From: Phaeosaccion multiseriatum
Taxonomy: Eukaryota; Protista; Ochrophyta, other classes
DNA length: 64,000 nt
Direction: 5' to 3'
Assembly (NCBI GenBank): GCA_965112735.1
Contig: OZ218951.1
Coordinates: forward strand, 5,518,001 to 5,582,000
The notes under the pieces are model-generated. The model saw only the letters and a list, made by a program, of their open reading frames with translations, ran no database searches and was not told where the DNA came from. Made by a program: the position numbers and the translations under genes. Positions 3,268 to 35,522 of this stretch are shown here, in pieces (positions within the stretch are counted from its first letter, which is position 1; every line of letters starts with the position of its first letter).

Positions 3268-4833
3268 TTAGGGTGAAGCAGCAGCAGCAGCCAGGAGGGC
3301 CGCCGCTTCCGTCTCTCTCTGATAGCGGGCCTTGTCCTCAAGAGCAAGGGCATCGTACCGGGCAGACTCCTCTGGGGACATTGCTCTGTAGGGACAGTGC
3401 CGGTCGACAAGAGAGAGAGAGAGAGGGGGGGGGGGGAGCGGGAGGGGAGCGGGAGGGGAGCGGGAGGGAGTGGAAGGGAGTGGAAGGATGGGGGGTAGAG
3501 GGGCAAGAGGAGGGGCAGGGGCAGGCATATCGGCAGGGGCAGGCATATGGGCAGGGGCCATGACAAGCGTCAGAGGTTGTTGTCACAAGCGGGATGGAAG
3601 GAAGAGGGGAACAGAGGGGAGGGAGAGAGATGGGAAGAGGAAGATGGGGAAGGGAGAAATAGAGAGACAGGAAGGAAGGAAGGAAGGAAGGAAGGAAGGG
3701 AGGGAGGGAGGGAGGGAGGGGGACGGAGAAACAGAGAGGAGGAGATAGGGAGGGAGGGTAAGAGAGACAGAGGAAGAGGGAGGGAACAGAGGGAGAGAGA
3801 GAGAGCGCGAGGGGCCGAGGGAGAGGAACAGCGAGATAGTAGAGGGAGGGAGCAAGGGGGGCAGAGTAGAGAGAGAGCGTGGGGGAGAGCGAGAGAAGAG
3901 AGGGGGGGAGGGAGAGTACAGAGAGAGGGAGCGAGCGAGAGAAGAGAGGGGAGACGAGCGACGGATCGTCGAGACTGAAACACAACATCCTCACTCCCTC
4001 ACTCACTCACTCACTCCCTCACTCACTCACTCACTCACTCACTCACTCACCCACTCACTCACCCACTCACTCACTCACTCCCTCACTCACTCCCTCACTC
4101 ACTCACTCACTCACTCACTCACCCACTCACTCACTCACCCACTCACTCACTCACCCACTCACTCACTCACTCACTCACTCACCCACTCACTCACTCACTC
4201 ACTCTCTCACTCACTCACTCACTCACTCACTCACTCCCTCACTCACCCACTCACTCACTCACTCCCTCACTCACTCCCTCACTCACTCACTCACTCACTC
4301 ACTCCCTCACTCACTCACTCCCTCACTCCCTCACTCACTCACTCACTCACTCACTCACTCCCTCACTCACTCACTCACTCCCTCACTCACTCACTCACTC
4401 ACTCACTCACTCACTCCCTCACTCACTCACTCCCTCACTCACTCACTCACTCACTCACTCACTCACTCACTCACTCCCTCACTCACTCACTCACTCACTC
4501 ACTCCCTCACTCACTCACTCACTCACTCACTCACTCCCTCACTCACTCACTCACTCCCTCACTCACTCACTCACTCACTCACTCCCTCACTCACTCACTC
4601 ACTCACTCACTCACTTGTACAGTGCGGAGAGGTCCTTAAAAGTAATGGATCCGCCGCCCTCCGCGCTGTCTTTCCGCTTGTCGCTGCAGAACAGGATGAA
4701 GCGGTTGCGCGGCTTGAGCGGCCCCCCAGCCGTAGCACCAACAGCTGCCCCTGCGCTGCCCTTCCGCTTCTTCCTGCTGCTACTACTACCACTATTACTA
4801 CTACTTCTACTACTACTCCTACTTCTACTACTC

Positions 4834-4874
<41 letters not shown>

Positions 4875-6147
4875 GCCCTCCTCCAGCTTCGCTTTGTACT
4901 CTGCCTTAAGCCTGTCTGCATCGTCTTCGAAGGGCCTCTTTTCCTCCTCACTCGCCTCCTTCCACATCTGCGCCACCACAGCCATCGCCCCCGGCCCCTT
5001 CTTTGCCTCAGTCGCTGCCGCCCTACTCTGTGCCTCTGCGAAGTTGGCCTTGACGAAGAGAATGTAGGCGCTAGGGGGCCGCTTGACCCCCTCCCTATCA
5101 TCACCCTCCTTGCCCTTGGCCTTGGCCTTGGCCTTGCCCTTGCCCTTGGCCTTGGTGGTCGTTGCCTTTCCCTTCTTCTTCTTCTTCTTTGCAGAAGGGT
5201 CCTTCGCAGCCGCTTCGTTAATCGCCTCTATGGGTGTGTGTGTGCGTGTTATGTGTGTGTGTGAGTGTGCGTGAGAGAGAGTGAGTGTGTGTGGGTGGGT
5301 GTGTTGGAGAGGAGGTGGGGATGATGTGTCAGTGTCTCCCTTCCTCCCGCCCCCCGTCCTTCCATCCCTCCCTCCTCCCTCCTCCCTTCCTCCTCCCCTC
5401 CCTCCCTCCCTCCCTCCCTCCCTCCCTCCCTCCTCCCTAAGTACCCACCTATTGCCTCCTCCAAGGAGCACGCCCCGGGGTCGTCCTTATACTGCTTGGG
5501 TAGCTTGCCCTTTAGAGACCCACACTTGATAAAGAATCCCCACCTGCCCTTTGTGGCCCACACTGCCTCCCCCTCGTACTCCCCCAAATGGTGCCCGAGC
5601 TTCTCTCGGATCGCGTCGGCGTACTCGATGGCAGTGGATGGCGTCATGGTGTACACGTCGTCCGGCTCCTTGATGCTCTTGAAGGCACCCAAGTACCTCA
5701 CAAATGGCCCGAATCGGCCCTGACCTGTTGGTTGTATACACACACGTTGCGTTGTTGCGAGTGTTAGTCATGCATGGACAAGAGAAGAGGGAGGGAGGGG
5801 AGGGGGGGGGAGGGGAGGGAGGCGGAGGCTTTCGGCTTCCGCGTACTGCACAGATGGACACACGCACACACACACGCACCCATTGACCTACCTACCACCA
5901 CTTCCTACCCCCCACCCGCACGCACATAGACTACCATCCCCTCACCCATTGACATACCTAGCACCACCTCCTCCCCTGTGTCGGGATGCAAGGCCACGAC
6001 CTTGGGGAACGCTAGCAAGTCCAGCGCCTGAGAGAGAGAGCGTTAAGACAGACAGAGAGAGAGAGCGTTAAGACAGACAGAGAGAGGGCGTTAAGACAGA
6101 CAGAGAGAGAGAGAGCGTTAAGACAGACAGAGAGAGAGAGAGCGTTA

Positions 6148-29919: not shown

Positions 29920-31153
29920 TCATCGATAGTCGTACTCGTCCTCAGAGGACTCCCCCTCCCCCTCCTCCCCCGCATATGTGCTGCTGGACTGCACGATGGC
30001 TCTGCCAATAGCCCCAATCCAATCGTCCTTCTCCTTCTCTGTGTTGGCGTACATGAAGTACTCCATGTCCTGAGTGGACACCTCCAGAGAGTTGCGGTGT
30101 CCAGTCTTTTGCTCGGCTGACTTGACCTGTTGGTGATACGAGGAGGATTAGGAGGGGGGAAGGGGGCGGAGAGGGGGCAGTAGTCAGAAGCAGGAGGAGG
30201 AGGAGGAGGAGGAGGAGGAGGAGGAGGAGGAGGAGGAGGGAGGAGGAGGAGGAAGGAGTGGTAGTAGTAATAAGAGCAGGAGTAGGACGAGTAGCAAACA
30301 GTAGCAGGACCACGTCGTCGAAGAGGGAGCTATGTTAGTGAAGAGGAGAGGGCAGACCGCACTCAGTTTCAGTCTACACGTGTCGATCAATATGGAGCAT
30401 ACACTGACAACGATTGGCTCCTGGAGCACTCTGTCCACTGCCACTACCAAAGGGCTCCGTCTCCCACACGTACACACCCAGCACTCTGCCTGATCCCATT
30501 GCACAGCTGACCTTCCGTCTCCCAAACCCATGGATCTCTCCTCTCCCCCCCCATCTCTCTTTTTCCCACCCTCTCTCTCCTCTCTCTCCCACCCTCCCTC
30601 TCTCTCTTCTCTCTCTGTCCCACCCTCTCTCTTCCCCCCCGCTCTCCTCTCTCCCTCTCCCCCCTCTCTCTCTCTTGGTGCGCATCGTACCGTAATGCAC
30701 GTGCCGAGGTCGATCATGCCGTGAGGGGCCACAGCTTCCGACTGCTTGGCAGAGCAGGGGAGTGGAAGAGAGGATTGAGGGGGCAGGGCAGGGCAGGGCA
30801 GGGGAGACAACTTTCACCTCCACCTCCTCCTTACTTTGCAGAAGAAGAGCCTGGATCCCTTGAGTATCATGAAGCGGAGGCGCCAAGACTTTAACCACGC
30901 GCTCTGCTTATACAGCCAGCCTATCGTACACAGAGAAAGGGAGAAGGTCAGAGGTAGGTTGGGGGGAGAGAGGGGGTCGACGGCTGAGTGAAGAGTGCGC
31001 TGCTCCACGCGAGAGTGAGCGAGAAAACGAAGGTGGGTGCAAAACACAGGAGATAACAATCAACAAGTACTCACCCGTGCACTCTCCTCCATTGCAGTCA
31101 TAGCGCATGCCTGTCGCCTGGTCCACATACGCCGGCCGTGCGCCCCTCGCCAT
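29920..31153 (-). CDS. Small pleckstrin-homology (PH) domain protein; 4 exons
   Basis: Exons: 31153-31075, 30920-30835, 30741-30691, 30126-29920. Protein reads GWLYKQSAWLKSWRLRFMILKGSRLFF...PHGMIDLGTCITVKSAE...YFMYANTEKEKDDWIGAIGRAIVQSS, then an acidic tail and TGA at 29920. Confidence 0.9.
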
Positions 31154-31573: not shown

Positions 31574-34500
31574 ATGTCGGAGCAGCATCTGGAGGAAGAA
31601 GGATCACGCTCGGTCCAAGCAAGGAGCAGGAGGAGCAGCAGGAGGAGGAGGAGGAGAACAGAGTCGGCAACAAGCCTGCACGCGCTGCTTCTCATGCTCA
31701 CCGTACCTCTGTCTCGCACGCTACGCCTGGTGCGGGCCTGGCGACCGGCAGTGCGTTTTTCAGCCACCCCACCCCCACGAGGAGCAGCAGGAATCTTGGG
31801 CGAGGGGCATGCCAACTGGGTTTGCTGCTGGAGAGCGAGTAGTAGCGGGCCAGCAGCAGGCAGGGCTCTTACAGCCTTGGGTGCGGCGAGGCGGAAAAGT
31901 AGTAGTGACAGCAAGAGTGCAAGTACACTCACCGGTGGTACGCTCCGAAGAAGAAGGTCCTCGTCTCTCGTCGAAAGGAAAGAGGATGATGCAAATGCAA
32001 CAGTGGCAGCTATCACGAGGTGAGCATCTACATCCCTGCACCCTGCTCGTGGGCGTCGGTCACTCTGGTCTACACACGGTACAGTCGTTGCTGTGGCTTT
32101 TGTTTTGTCAATGATCGCATACAACCAAGAGCCATTGTCCTACGCCCCCACCCCTCCACCTCTTAAAGCCCTGCTACGCCTACCGCACCACTCCACCCCC
32201 CTCTTTGACAACATAACACCGCAGGAGAACAACACGCCGCGCCCTGACGAACGCCGAGCTCCTGGCTGCCCTGCCATTGGCCGAGCGAGCCTTGTGTGCC
32301 GCTCTGGAAGGGCAGGCCCGGAGGTTCCACCTCGGACTCGACATCAACACACAGAGCACAGGCTACGCCGTGCTGGGCGGGTGGGGTGGGTGGGAGGAGA
32401 GTAGAAGCGGGAGGGGGAGGGCTCTGCCGCCGCTCGTGGTGGAGTGGGGCACCGTGACAGGACCCAAAAAGTGCGATTTGCTGGACATGGGCGGCCTCAT
32501 CGCCGAGGAGCTGAGCAGGGTGAAGGAGCGCTGCAACCGAGGTGTGTGTGTTTGTGTGTGCGTGTGTGTGCGTGTGTGTGTGTGTGTTTGTGTGTATGTG
32601 GATGGATTTTCTCTTTCTTCTTTTTCCCTGATGGATGTGCAACCTTGTTTGTCTCCTCTTCCCCTGATTCCTTGCCTTGTCAAACTTCTCCACCCCCTCA
32701 GTCGCCGGCACCACTCTTGGACCCCGCGAGAATACAGTAGGGGAAGATGAAGAAGATCAAGGAGGGGGAGAGGCAGAGTGGGAAAGGCCGGAGTGGACAG
32801 TAGGCATCGAAGACTTCATGAGGGCGTTTCGGCCCGGCAAGTTTCAGACCAAAGCCCTCTTCCAACTCGCACAGGTAGGTGGCAAGGAGGTATGTGGGCA
32901 TCCGGTGCGGTTTCAGTTTCAGTTTCGTTTCAGCTTCAGTTCTCAGACGGAGTCGATCAATGATGCACAAGCCTTTCCCTCCCTCCCTCCCTCCCTCCCT
33001 CCCTCCCTTCCTCACTCCCTTCCTCCCTCACTCCCTTCCTCCCTCCCTCCTTCCCTCCCTCCCTCCCTCCCTCCCTCCCTCCCTCTCAGCTGAACGGCAT
33101 CGTCAACTACAGCTGCTTGGGCCTCTTCGGCAGCAAGCCCAACACTGTCCACCCTAACGCAGCCAGAGCCTTCTATAGCCTCAAGAAGACAGAGGTGAGA
33201 TCGCTTATGACCTTGCCCCGAGAGACGCGAACCACCAACATGCCAAGTAACATGTCCAGTCCGCTACTATTGGGCCATGGCGTCCCACCCCTCCCCCCCA
33301 GCCCACTCTCTCACTCACTCACAGCCCGTCAGCCATAGATAGCCCCTCTGCTCTCCTGCCTCTGCACATACACTGGTCGTCATGTCGTGATATTTGTCAA
33401 AGTCGCTCTGTGCATCCTCCACACCTCGCCAAGGGCCTGCCTTACGTAGCCTTACGTAGCCTTCTCCTCCCGTTGTTCCAAGGAGATGCCCCCCCCCACC
33501 CCTCTTGCATCCCTCTCATACTCCTCTTCCCTATTCCAACTACCCTCCGTCCCTCCGTCCCTCTCTCCCTCCCTCCTTCCCTCCATCTCTCCCTCCCTCA
33601 TTCCCTACCTCCTCCCTCCCTCCTCCCTCCCTCCTTCCCTCCCTCCTCCCTCCTCCTCCCCCCGCCTCGCCTCCTTAGACCCAAGACGTGAAGGAGAGAG
33701 TGTTTGCCTATGTGATCCGACAGCCTGACTTGGTGTGCCAGACGCACCCCTGGAAGCTGAAGCGAGGAGGGGGGGTGCACAGGGACAATTTTGACGTTAC
33801 GGATGCCTACCTCGTTGCCTTGCACTCTTGGCACAATACCGTCCTCACGGACCTCAGCCTCAACACTGCCCTACGGGACAGGTGAGTGAGTGAGAGTTTT
33901 GTGTGTGGGTAGGTGAATGAGTGAGTGAGTGAGTGAGAGTTTTGTGTGTGGGTGAATGAGTGAGAGAGTGATTGAGTGAGTGAGTGAGTGAGTGAGTTAA
34001 TGTGTCTGTGGTTGAATGGTTGAGTGAGTGAGTGAGTGAGTGAGTGAGTGTGTGTGTGAGTGAGTGTGTGTGTGGTGTGTATGTACTACACCTGCGGTGC
34101 GTCTATTACCATCGCCAGTCGCCTCAGTCGTATACCCGTGTCCCTCCTCACCCCTCCCGCCCCTCTTTGGGTCCCTTCCCACCTCTCTTTGGGTCCCCTC
34201 CCACCCCCACCACCCTCTATGACTCCGCCGGAATGGAATGGTCGGACGCCCCACACAGCTTCATCTCCTGCTATGAACAAGAAAACGCCCTCAAGCTGGC
34301 CGCGGCAGAGAGCCGCTTGCTCAAGAAGGCGGCCAAGGAGAGCAAAGGAGGCCACGCGGACCTCGGGGAGAAGGGTCAACAGAAACGACTCAAGGACGAG
34401 CAGAAACAGCAGCAGAAACTGCTCAAGAAGCACCGAGTAGAGGCGCGGGAGAGGACGGAAGCACTCTTTGAAGAGGCGCTGGAGTGCTGGGTCAAAGGAA

Positions 34501-34586
34501 GAATGGTGATTCAGGGCGGGAACGAGGAGGAGGAGGAGGAGGAGGAGGAGGAGACGACGGAGGACGAGGACGAGGAAGAGGAATGA
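31574..34586 (+). CDS. RuvC-like (RNase H fold) Holliday-junction resolvase with N-terminal organellar-type presequence; 6 exons
   Basis: Exons: 31574-32019, 32225-32541, 32702-32874, 33090-33194, 33679-33881, 34259-34586, with compatible phases. Motifs: HLGLDINTQSTGYAVL, VGIEDF, LFQLAQLNGIV, VHPNAARAFY, DVKERVFAYV, NFDVTDAYLVA, giving the RuvC D/E/D/D acidic set. The C-terminus is K/E/Q-rich. Confidence 0.78.
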
Positions 34587-34679: not shown

Positions 34680-35522
34680 AGGGGCGCTGTGGCGGAGCAG
34701 GCTCATCACAGCGGCGCTGACCTTGAGAGGCGTTACAGTGATGACGATGGGAGAGCAGCCTTGATGGCAGCTGATGGCAGCCTTGATGGCAGCCTTGATG
34801 GCAGCTGATGGCAGCTGAGGGCAGCTGATGGCAGCTGATGGCAGCTGATGGCAGCTGATGGCAGCTGATGGCAGCTGATGGCAGCTGATGGTAGCATCTG
34901 TGGAAGGGCACCCCGAAGTGTTGTGCGCAAGCTGCTCAGGGCTGGGGCAGAGGTGAATGCGATGAGTGGTGACGAGTATGGAGCGATACACTTGGCATCT
35001 CGGTTTGGCCATGCTCGTGTCGTGGAGGAACTCATCTCAGGAGGTGCCGATGTGGAGATGCTGACTGATCCTGGTCTTGGGGGCTTCATACCTTTGTATG
35101 AGGCTGCTCTGCACGGCCATGGGGCAGTGATCCGCGAGCTCTTGTCTGCGGTACCAGCACTTCCAAGTAAGAGGAATGTGCCTCTCCTCTCCTGCGAGGC
35201 CCTCGCTTGCTGCGGCAGAGCGCTGGAGATGCTCTCAGGAGGGGCCTCACATTGCAAAAGGCTTTGTCTATAACCCTTCGGATCTCCTGTCTCTAACCCT
35301 TCGGATCTCCTGTCTCTAACCCTTCGGATCTCCTTCGGGCTATACAACGGAGCCTCTATCCTCTGTCCACTGCCCTTTGGCGACGGACAGACGACAACAC
35401 TTTGCGCGTTGGACTTGATGCGGGGCCCTGACCTTCTCTTTGGCAAGGAAGGGAGGCTGAAGGTGTCGCAGAGAGAGGTTAGCCCTGAGATGCTGCAGGA
35501 GGTGGCGGAGGAGATGGCATGA
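34680..35522 (+). pseudogene. 5'-truncated ankyrin-repeat pseudogene, copy 2 (paralog of 27663-29141)
   Basis: VVRKLLRAGAEVNAMSGDEYGAIHLASRFGHARVVEELISGGADVEML matches copy 1. The 3' block (CTTTGGCAAGGAAGGGAGGCTGAAGGTGTCGCAGAGAG...GAGATGGCATGA) is near-identical. Disrupted by a (GATGGCAGCT)n array at 34763-34892 and a 22-bp triplication at 35265-35335. Confidence 0.82.

Follow-up and report, generated by a model that had tools for sequence, protein, structure and literature searches.

The untangling and partitioning of organelle genomes is known for green plastids, through MOC1, and for fungal mitochondria, through Cce1/Ydc2. MOC1 acts as a dimer through its alpha2 helices, and disruption of the dimer drastically impairs cleavage (PMC7078210). 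In full-text literature covering MOC1 and RuvC papers we found no RuvC-like resolvase described for brown algae, xanthophytes or other ochrophytes, and resolvases are nowhere mentioned in a review on the enzymes that replicate organelle DNA in photosynthetic eukaryotes. Here we describe a gene at positions 31574-34586 (forward strand) of a 64,000-nucleotide stretch of the Phaeosaccion multiseriatum genome (assembly GCA_965112735.1, contig OZ218951.1, positions 5,518,001 to 5,582,000), referred to below as the window, whose own numbering is used throughout. An initial annotation, made from the sequence letters alone, had proposed that this locus encodes a RuvC-like Holliday junction resolvase split over six exons. 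Judged by sequence, our analysis confirms that the locus holds a real nuclear gene of six exons with spliceosomal introns, and it supports placing the gene in an undescribed algal branch of the phage-type RuvC-like resolvases. We consider it probable that the product is a metal-dependent junction nuclease of RuvC fold from an undescribed family, whose phage-type core was captured once and which is most likely organellar. The kind of enzyme is known; what is new is the lineage, the architecture and an apparently independent origin.

Phage-type relatives, fold and catalytic residues

With exon 2 as the sole query, phmmer returned nine relatives (E 5e-7 to 7e-4) from 1.84 billion representative proteins, and profile searches seeded from the family gave 38 matches and later 295. 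All named matches are ochrophyte algae, namely Ectocarpus, Laminaria, Scytosiphon, Hapterophycus, Discosporangium, Phaeothamnion and the xanthophyte Heterococcus, and family members are labelled no more precisely than "conserved unknown protein" (as in Ectocarpus) or "unnamed protein product". We take the family to be a previously undescribed one that occurs, as far as the sequence matches indicate, in Phaeophyceae, Phaeothamnion, xanthophytes and the P. multiseriatum genome. No homologue was found in diatoms or other named lineages by word-index searches that scored the best 8000 candidates, the sole exhaustive search having used exon 2 only; a further word-index search, which used the stop-free frame that surrounds exon 2 and took scores over that exon, gave no match within a length range of 97-310 aa.

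The tail of the profile searches contained short proteins of ~175-190 aa that share the signature ILGLDISTS.TG, IE, F.PG, LAKFNGIVSW, AR, K and D..D[AS]. These match PHROG 159, 827 and 1770, all named Holliday junction resolvase, with E-values of 1e-13 to 1e-5, and one of them (P0039) passes the Pfam RuvC cut-off with 23.3 versus 22.2 bits. The algal protein P0003 matches phrog_159 directly (E 7.2e-8). When the algal alignment, including the window exons, was compared with the phage-type alignment using hhalign, the two matched over 174 columns with a probability of 99.8% and an E-value of 2.3e-28, a match that covers the entire short phage-type protein. The spliced window protein is 34% identical to P0035 in a local alignment of 174 positions spanning aa 185-415. 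Exon 2 alone likewise pointed to phage-type proteins in a feature search, and in PHROGs it reached phrog_827 on motif I at an E-value of 0.43. The suggestion in the initial annotation that the GLD-x-[NS]-T..TG signature is of phage type is borne out by the PHROG matches, the profile-profile comparison, the phage-like genomic context of short relatives and the tailed-phage structural neighbours described below.

Direct searches from the window gene returned little. The Pfam scan of this gene was done on exon pieces and gave only noise on the charged exon 6, and the same pieces found nothing in NCBIfam or among PDB sequences. Exons 2 and 5 have no significant tblastn match in 50,697 phage records, and P0039 has just two weak matches in the same records. 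By hhalign, E. coli RuvC aligns with the family at motif I only (E 3.7e-5). Six-frame scans of the P. multiseriatum genome with phrog_159, PF02075 and PF09159 were blank; phrog_159 missed the window's own gene, so that such scans are blind to short exons and do not establish the absence of a canonical RuvC or Ydc2 from the genome.

The catalytic set proved intact, as the initial annotation had claimed: none of 13 algal and 110 phage-type sequences departs from D188, E291, D386 and D389. T191, G195 and K352 are also invariant in both sets, and G300, N314, G315 and R338 show at most one exception per set. The first catalytic aspartate, D188 (codon GAC, 32340-32342), is the counterpart of E. coli RuvC D7 by hhalign. 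The catalytic glutamate E291 (codon GAA, 32809-32811) corresponds to E66, and the D-x-x-D pair D386 and D389 (codons at 33793-33795 and 33802-33804) to D138/D141 (ADAADALAIA), in a reading of motif order and not by structural superposition. In the homologue models E291 lies on beta4, and the D-x-x-D pair opens the C-terminal helix of the core.

Fold and dimer were computed on the homologues P0003 and P0018 from alignments that contain the window exons; their identity to the window protein is 39-44%. The model of P0003 residues 140-432 reached a pLDDT of 88.0 and a pTM of 0.86, that of P0018 a pLDDT of 86.8 and a pTM of 0.85, and both show the beta-beta-beta-alpha-beta-alpha-beta-alpha order of the RNase H/RuvC core. 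Foldseek against the PDB ranked bacterial RuvC chains in the top 12 places (E 6.5e-7 to 1.8e-5, TM by target 0.66-0.77), followed by Ydc2 (E 2.9e-5), TEFM, Lactococcus phage 67 RuvC, MOC1 and the fowlpox resolvase. A second, independent all-against-all aligner, VIA-align, gave Z values (model 1 / model 2) of 16.7 (152/153 residues, rmsd 2.4) / 15.7 for P. aeruginosa RuvC, 16.6 / 16.7 for Lactococcus phage 67 RuvC, 16.5 / 15.8 for T. thermophilus RuvC and 15.4-15.6 / 15.3-15.6 for two MOC1 entries, with 150-157 residues aligned in this tier of RuvC, phage 67 RuvC and MOC1. Lower values were obtained for TEFM (12.3-12.5 / 11.4-12.8), the canarypox resolvase (12.3 / 12.0), Ydc2 (11.7 / 11.5), and YqgF/RuvX together with IS110-type transposases (8.9-10.7 / 8.4-10.1). 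The nearest structural neighbours anywhere are tailed-phage clusters of the ESM Atlas (TM 0.84-0.89, rmsd 2.1-2.7, 174-184 residues), which lie closer than any solved structure; the best match in BFVD has an E-value of 3.4e-10. According to these models, the protein has the RuvC/RNase H fold and groups with RuvC, phage RuvC and MOC1. A fold other than RuvC, or a grouping with YqgF or a transposase, had been named at the outset as speaking against a resolvase; what was found is a RuvC/RNase H fold in the RuvC/MOC1 tier, at Z 15.3-16.7.

Two related identities were considered and rejected. YqgF/RuvX reaches Z values of 8.4-10.7, about 6 units under the RuvC tier, and has no Pfam match. Among DEDD (IS110-type) transposases, IS621 and ISCro4 give Z values of 10.1-10.7 with a TM of ~0.25, and the window gene is single-copy with conserved introns.

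Because MOC1 works as an alpha2 dimer, two copies of the modelled domain were tested as a homodimer. The predicted complex gave an ipSAE of 0.66 compared with 0.06 for the best control, with at least 81% of the contacts common to the runs and a partner pLDDT of at least 68; the mark used for a dimer is attained by 21 of 30 solved homodimers and by none of 23 solved monomers. The predicted interface is symmetric and consists of model residues 143-161, which form the conserved alpha2 helix TRALFTLAQLNGIVKFSC, and the start of alpha1. The predicted dimer would employ the same helix as RuvC and MOC1.

Compared with the described enzymes, the algal protein most resembles the tailed-phage RuvC-like resolvases of PHROG 159/827/1770, with which it shares homology over the full core, the elements LGLD-I/x-S/N-T..TG, IE, F.PG, LA..NGI, AR, K and D..D[AS], an invariant D-E-D-D set and the closest structural similarity. 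Those enzymes are bare single domains encoded in replication/recombination gene modules, whereas the window gene is nuclear, interrupted by five introns, and encodes a 523-aa protein that has a leader, a helix ahead of the domain, low-complexity loops that vary, and at the C-terminus a conserved extension of three helices. With its algal-specific extensions, the window protein is a eukaryotic derivative of this group, not the product of a phage gene. Bacterial RuvC (PF02075; E. coli, T. thermophilus, P. aeruginosa) is similar in its fold over nearly the whole chain (Z 15.7-16.7, rmsd 2.4), in the order and type of its catalytic residues, in motif I by profile and in a dimer predicted through the equivalent helix, but the algal motif I reads GLD-I-[NS]-T instead of GIDPG, there is no RuvA/RuvB context and the extensions are specific to the eukaryotic protein. 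MOC1, found in green-lineage chloroplasts, is likewise a nuclear-encoded RuvC-fold protein with an acidic tetrad and an alpha2 dimer (PMC7078210) and matches at Z 15.3-15.6, and the algal protein probably has an organellar job of the same kind. MOC1 differs in lineage, as ochrophytes have red-derived secondary plastids, and in the apparent source of the algal protein, a phage-type family; no MOC1, with the Zm and Nt proteins included, is among the PDB-sequence profile matches at E-values up to 10. The fungal mitochondrial Cce1/Ydc2 (PF09159) is also nuclear-encoded and organelle-targeted and has a RuvC fold with extra helical elements, but it belongs to another lineage, its Z values of 11.5-11.7 are clearly weaker than those of RuvC, phage RuvC and MOC1, and there is no PF09159 match. 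The RuvC of Lactococcus phage bIL67 (PDB 4ktw) is of phage origin and a joint best structural match (Z 16.6-16.7, 153-154 residues). By hhalign the family profile has no match in bIL67 ORF16, which was taken for this RuvC by length alone and does not bear that name in its record. The sequence relatives of the algal family would appear to be a phage RuvC-like group other than bIL67 RuvC.

Two of the short relatives reside in phage-like marine contigs with dense same-strand genes, most of them without family. On the unrelated contigs L004 (3760-9757) and L007 (8001-13990), the RuvC-like gene lies a few genes from a primase and from a Metallophos/AAA_23 protein of ~1050 aa that resembles SbcCD/Mre11-Rad50, an arrangement that looks like a conserved recombination module. 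L007 also encodes Thg1-like and Ro60/TROVE genes.

The sole solved proteins touched by the family profile (alignment A3) are Cas9, at the RuvC-I motif (GLDIG..SVGWA), with a best E-value of 1.2e-3 and a range up to 1. In its wording, motif I of the phage and algal family is nearer to Cas9 than to the GIDPG of bacterial RuvC.

Gene structure and algal homologues

The joined exons comprise 1572 nt and form a single frame of 523 codons plus a TGA stop (34584-34586), and all five introns run from GT to AG. The splice proposed in the initial annotation is upheld by these borders, by the single frame and by homologues that are colinear over the junctions, and every motif that it quoted is present in the spliced protein: LGLDINT at aa 185, GIEDF at 289, LAQLNGIV at 310, NAARAF at 335, DVKERV at 350 and FDVTDAY at 385.

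Exon 1 (31574-32019), identified as an open reading frame with a GT donor, encodes aa 1-148 plus 2 nt and consists of a non-conserved N-terminal leader; this exon and its start codon have no homology support, and the start is uncertain. Intron 1 (32020-32224, phase 2) interrupts an Arg codon immediately 5' of the conserved pre-domain helix. Exon 2 (32225-32541, aa 149-254) encodes this helix, beta1-beta3 with motif I (LGLDINTQSTGYAVL), alpha1 and a lineage-specific Gly/Trp loop, an assignment based on phmmer matches, alignments and the secondary structure of the homologue models. Intron 2 (32542-32701, phase 1) contains a (GT)n microsatellite and is flanked by a variable loop, so that its exact limits rest on GT-AG and frame only. 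Exon 3 (32702-32874, aa 255-312) covers a variable acidic loop, beta4 (WTVGIEDF), the FxPG turn and the start of the dimer helix alpha2. Intron 3 (32875-33089, phase 0) is largely CCCTCC repeat; its position is absent from the Ectocarpus and Phaeothamnion genes, and its removal gives LAQ|LNGIV, a stretch that is unbroken in every homologue. Exon 4 (33090-33194, aa 313-347) holds the remainder of alpha2 (LNGIVNYSCLGLF), beta5 and the conserved HP..AR motif with R338. Intron 4 (33195-33678, phase 0) lies four residues past the conserved FY[GS]L. Exon 5 (33679-33881, aa 348-414 plus 2 nt) encodes the conserved Lys helix (DVKERV, with K352), a loop and the catalytic helix FDVTDAYLVALHSWH, and is followed by intron 5 (33882-34258, phase 2), which contains (GAGT)n repeats. 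Exon 6 (34259-34586, aa 415-523 plus stop) encodes an algal-specific helical extension and a species-specific Glu/Asp tail; its pattern SF..Y...H...L..AE, followed by HR......R....FE.A...W, is common to the algal homologues and missing from the phage-type proteins.

The gene model was accepted because homologues run colinear over the junctions and share introns in position and phase. Identity between the spliced protein and its Phaeothamnion and Discosporangium homologues is 42-44% over 278-345 residues, and these homologues are continuous over the window junctions, for example at LAQ|LNGIV and LRD|SF; colinearity over every junction is seen with brown-algal, Phaeothamnion and xanthophyte homologues that are intronless or annotated. 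The Heterococcus entry is apparently a transcript assembly, judging by its record name. When the Ectocarpus and Phaeothamnion proteins were mapped to their own genomic loci and the exact splice sites and phases were solved, four of the five window introns (1, 2, 4 and 5) had the same position and phase as Phaeothamnion introns, and introns 4 and 5 were common to Ectocarpus too. The Phaeothamnion counterpart of intron 1 is a phase 2 intron within an Arg codon, which is then followed by x-T-T. The Heterococcus transcript and the xanthophyte gene calls break or carry an insert precisely at the intron-4 site.

The gene is present in one copy in the 67-Mb, 22-contig assembly. Its GC content of 0.60 (exons 60%, introns 57%) is in keeping with the 0.593 of the whole window, and introns 3 and 4 are filled by CCCTCC-type arrays, of which there are ~50 further occurrences elsewhere in the window. 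Composition and intron repeats are typical for the host genome. Microsatellites make up most of the intron sequence: (GT)n, (GAGT)n and, as read on the coding strand, (CCCTCC)n. They are located at 32542-32607, 32968-33088, 33520-33670 and 33882-34070, and Logan contigs from genomic runs end at each of them.

Several features of the homologous records concern the same sites. The Heterococcus protein P0010 has an insert of ~40 residues precisely at the shared intron-4 position that looks like a retained intron, and the JGI gene calls P0001 and P0011 (L012:2625-3560) have unrelated ends from the intron-4 point, as though reading into the intron. The Ectocarpus intron at this site (L013:7865-9161) has a GC donor instead of GT. 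At the other end of the gene, the Ectocarpus siliculosus model (L013:1501-11640; 442 aa) begins MCLWAAAT, and the proteins of Ectocarpus sp. 12 and Laminaria carry ~45-65 extra N-terminal residues 5' of the same MCLW/CVW point, including ALA|FGVP or AFA|FGVP. This comparison (P0017, P0021 and P0014) suggests that the E. siliculosus annotation is probably 5'-truncated, which hides a targeting leader.

Origin, targeting and putative role

A maximum-likelihood tree was built from 38 rows: 12 algal sequences including the spliced window core, 25 phage-type sequences left after 110 had been thinned on 3-mer similarity, and, as outgroup, E. coli RuvC, with MOC1, Ydc2 and poxvirus A22 outside the tree. 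The algal sequences form one clade with a support of 100/99. Within it there is a brown-algal sub-clade with Discosporangium basal, and the window protein falls outside the brown algae, near Phaeothamnion and Heterococcus. One algal clade together with shared introns therefore indicates a single uptake before brown algae, Phaeothamnion and xanthophytes split, which would have been followed by vertical descent. The view that the enzyme is domesticated and separately acquired fits these results, since the introns are common to algal classes, the algal proteins form a single clade, and no sequence link to MOC1 or Ydc2 was detected; the origin appears independent of MOC1 and Cce1/Ydc2. A giant-virus origin was rejected: the FirrV-1 B26 protein ranks only 41 among the viral structure matches, and no giant-virus sequence appeared in any sequence search. 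This protein (Q6XM10, FirrV-1-B26 of Feldmannia irregularis virus a; BFVD E 4.6e-5) is the RuvC-fold resolvase of a brown-algal giant virus. On the structural matches, host and FirrV-1 virus appear to use different resolvase lineages.

Relative to the phage-type proteins, the algal proteins have an added non-conserved leader, a conserved pre-core helix (S-N-x-x-L-L...C) and a conserved C-terminal extension. The initial annotation had noted this extension as charged and helical; in the full-length model of P0018 it forms three confident helices at 285-298, 300-316 and 333-363. No solved resolvase aligns past the core in structural comparison, and the window copy ends in a Glu/Asp tail that is missing from other homologues. 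A role of the extension in DNA or nucleoid tethering may be suggested.

N-termini were judged by hydropathy and charge scans and by eye. The window leader has an acidic and then Arg-rich start, a hydrophobic segment at aa 37-47 and then a basic Ser/Thr/Ala-rich region nearly without acidic residues; homologue leaders are similar in character and unalignable in sequence. In heterokonts, a signal peptide followed by an aromatic +1 residue (ASAFAP-type) and a transit-peptide-like region is the bipartite plastid-targeting pattern. The xanthophyte proteins P0001 and P0011 have a strongly hydrophobic signal peptide (hydropathy 2.4-2.6), SMA|F and then at least 60 residues without acidic amino acids, and the kelp and Ectocarpus sp. 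copies show a weaker version, ALA|FGVP. One environmental copy looks mitochondrial, and two (P0025 and P0026) are nearly without a leader. The organellar-type leader first proposed for the window gene is thus clear as a plastid-type signal in the xanthophyte copies and ambiguous in the window's own copy. From these sequences, organelle targeting is likely for the family, with the plastid favoured, and may apply to P. multiseriatum itself.

Taken together, these results can be arranged in a putative mechanism. The ~240-aa core, homologous end to end with the ~175-190-aa tailed-phage RuvC-like resolvases and retaining D188, E291, D386 and D389, would pair with a second subunit via alpha2 (LAQLNGIV...), much as RuvC and MOC1 do. 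Such a dimer would take up a four-way junction in its basic cleft and nick it symmetrically at two points, so that DNA circles undergoing recombination or replication would come apart. Capture of the family would have happened a single time before the algal classes diverged, and it would later have gained introns, the N-terminal targeting leader, the pre-domain helix and the three-helix C-terminal extension. Its workplace would be the organelle nucleoid, with the plastid favoured, and its job that of MOC1 in green plastids and of Cce1/Ydc2 in fungal mitochondria. Junction-specific cleavage by the algal protein we infer by analogy with these enzymes, and we likewise presume which organelle it serves, what its biological role is and in which direction the transfer ran. 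We propose, tentatively, that brown algae and their relatives may have in this family their Holliday junction resolvase for an organelle, most likely the plastid, and that a tailed phage may have been its source in a single capture. If true, RuvC-fold resolvases would have been recruited to eukaryotic organelles a third time, independently of MOC1 and Cce1/Ydc2, and organelle DNA maintenance would contain one more phage-derived part. The family provides a concrete candidate resolvase for brown algae, kelps and relatives that no Pfam model covers, and it looks like a phage enzyme turned eukaryotic housekeeping gene, whose shared introns date the capture before the algal classes split. The compact, dimeric junction nuclease, being of a new type in sequence, could also serve as a structure-specific DNA tool, a use to which MOC1 has already been put (PMC10867802).

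A number of observations weigh against this reading. Nine algal homologues, including full-length proteins, reach no Pfam resolvase model, RuvC PF02075 included, and family profiles compared with PDB sequences found no RuvC, MOC1, Ydc2 or phage 67 RuvC. The modelled fold and dimer are those of homologues at 39-44% identity, the dimer result may reflect recall of solved RuvC dimers, and a RuvC fold with an intact tetrad is no proof of specificity for four-way junctions. Two RNA runs match the locus only at simple-repeat words, and the contigs of the remaining runs are genomic and include the introns. The window leader is odd as a signal peptide, with an acidic and poly-Arg start of 36 residues and a possible VRA|W site seen by eye only, and the runs of Arg/Lys at the two ends of the protein might serve for nuclear localisation instead. 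The algal clade nests in the phage-type set with moderate support (90/78, 92/59) and the outgroup branch is very long, for which reason a phage-to-alga direction of transfer is likely but not proven.

An enzyme of the same class might instead work in the nucleus or cytosol, as a structure-specific nuclease for nuclear DNA repair or recombination. The poly-Arg run at the window N-terminus without a clean signal peptide, the Lys/Arg-rich C-terminal extension and the nearly leaderless divergent environmental homologues P0025 and P0026 would fit such a role, which we nevertheless regard as unlikely given the textbook bipartite plastid signal of the xanthophyte copies and the ALA|FGVP of the kelp and Ectocarpus copies past the first ~15 residues. 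It also counts against a nuclear role that GEN1, MUS81 and SLX1 already serve the nuclei of eukaryotes, and that all eukaryotic resolvases of RuvC fold known to us as characterised (MOC1, Cce1/Ydc2) are organellar. The protein could also be an active RuvC-fold nuclease with another substrate, acting in fork, flap or D-loop processing, in organelle DNA degradation or on replication concatemers. Fold and tetrad also occur in RuvC domains that are not resolvases (Cas9, IscB and terminases, at Z 9-12), the family profile touches the RuvC-I motif of Cas9, the algal helical extension has no counterpart in solved resolvases, and phage RuvC-like enzymes are often broad debranching nucleases. However, the best structural matches with near-full coverage are all dedicated dimeric junction resolvases and the predicted dimer lies on the resolvase interface, so that we see a rather small chance for such a substrate.

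Two further explanations appear very improbable. A catalytically silent RuvC-fold scaffold has a precedent in TEFM, the mitochondrial transcription elongation factor, which is regarded as nuclease-inactive, is organellar and is a mid-rank structural match (Z 12.5-12.8); yet the tetrad is invariant in 124 sequences, the window's counted, and the tier of RuvC, phage RuvC and MOC1 stands 3-4 Z units above TEFM. We give equally little credence to a locus that is not a host gene, whether it came in with an endogenous giant virus or phage, travelled on a transposon, is a contaminant or is a pseudogene in decay. Brown-algal genomes hold many phaeovirus insertions according to the literature, and the phaeovirus resolvase FirrV-1 B26 is among the structural matches, at rank 41, but as a giant-virus resolvase it is a far weaker match than the tailed-phage proteins. 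The gene itself has five spliceosomal introns, four of them common to another algal class, composition and intron repeats typical of the genome, a single copy, an intact frame and the invariant tetrad, and it shows a branching that resembles the species tree and eukaryotic neighbours with ankyrin and PH-domain matches.

Neighbouring genes

The flanking genes are ordinary eukaryotic ones without a link to DNA metabolism. Downstream, an open reading frame at 34878-35270 (+) encodes ankyrin repeats (Pfam Ank, E 5.7e-12), and an upstream fragment at 30817-31059 (-) has a sub-threshold match to a PH domain (2e-4). The initial annotation had also suggested a partnership with TopA-HMG, which we could not sustain: that gene lies at 3268-6027, nothing links the two, and because they are 25 kb apart in a eukaryotic genome their proximity has no functional meaning. 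Between the resolvase stop and the next open reading frame there is a tandem array of a 10-bp unit (GATGGCAGCT) at 34762-34895, of which the part at 34762-34800 shows a length or sequence variant in one genomic run.

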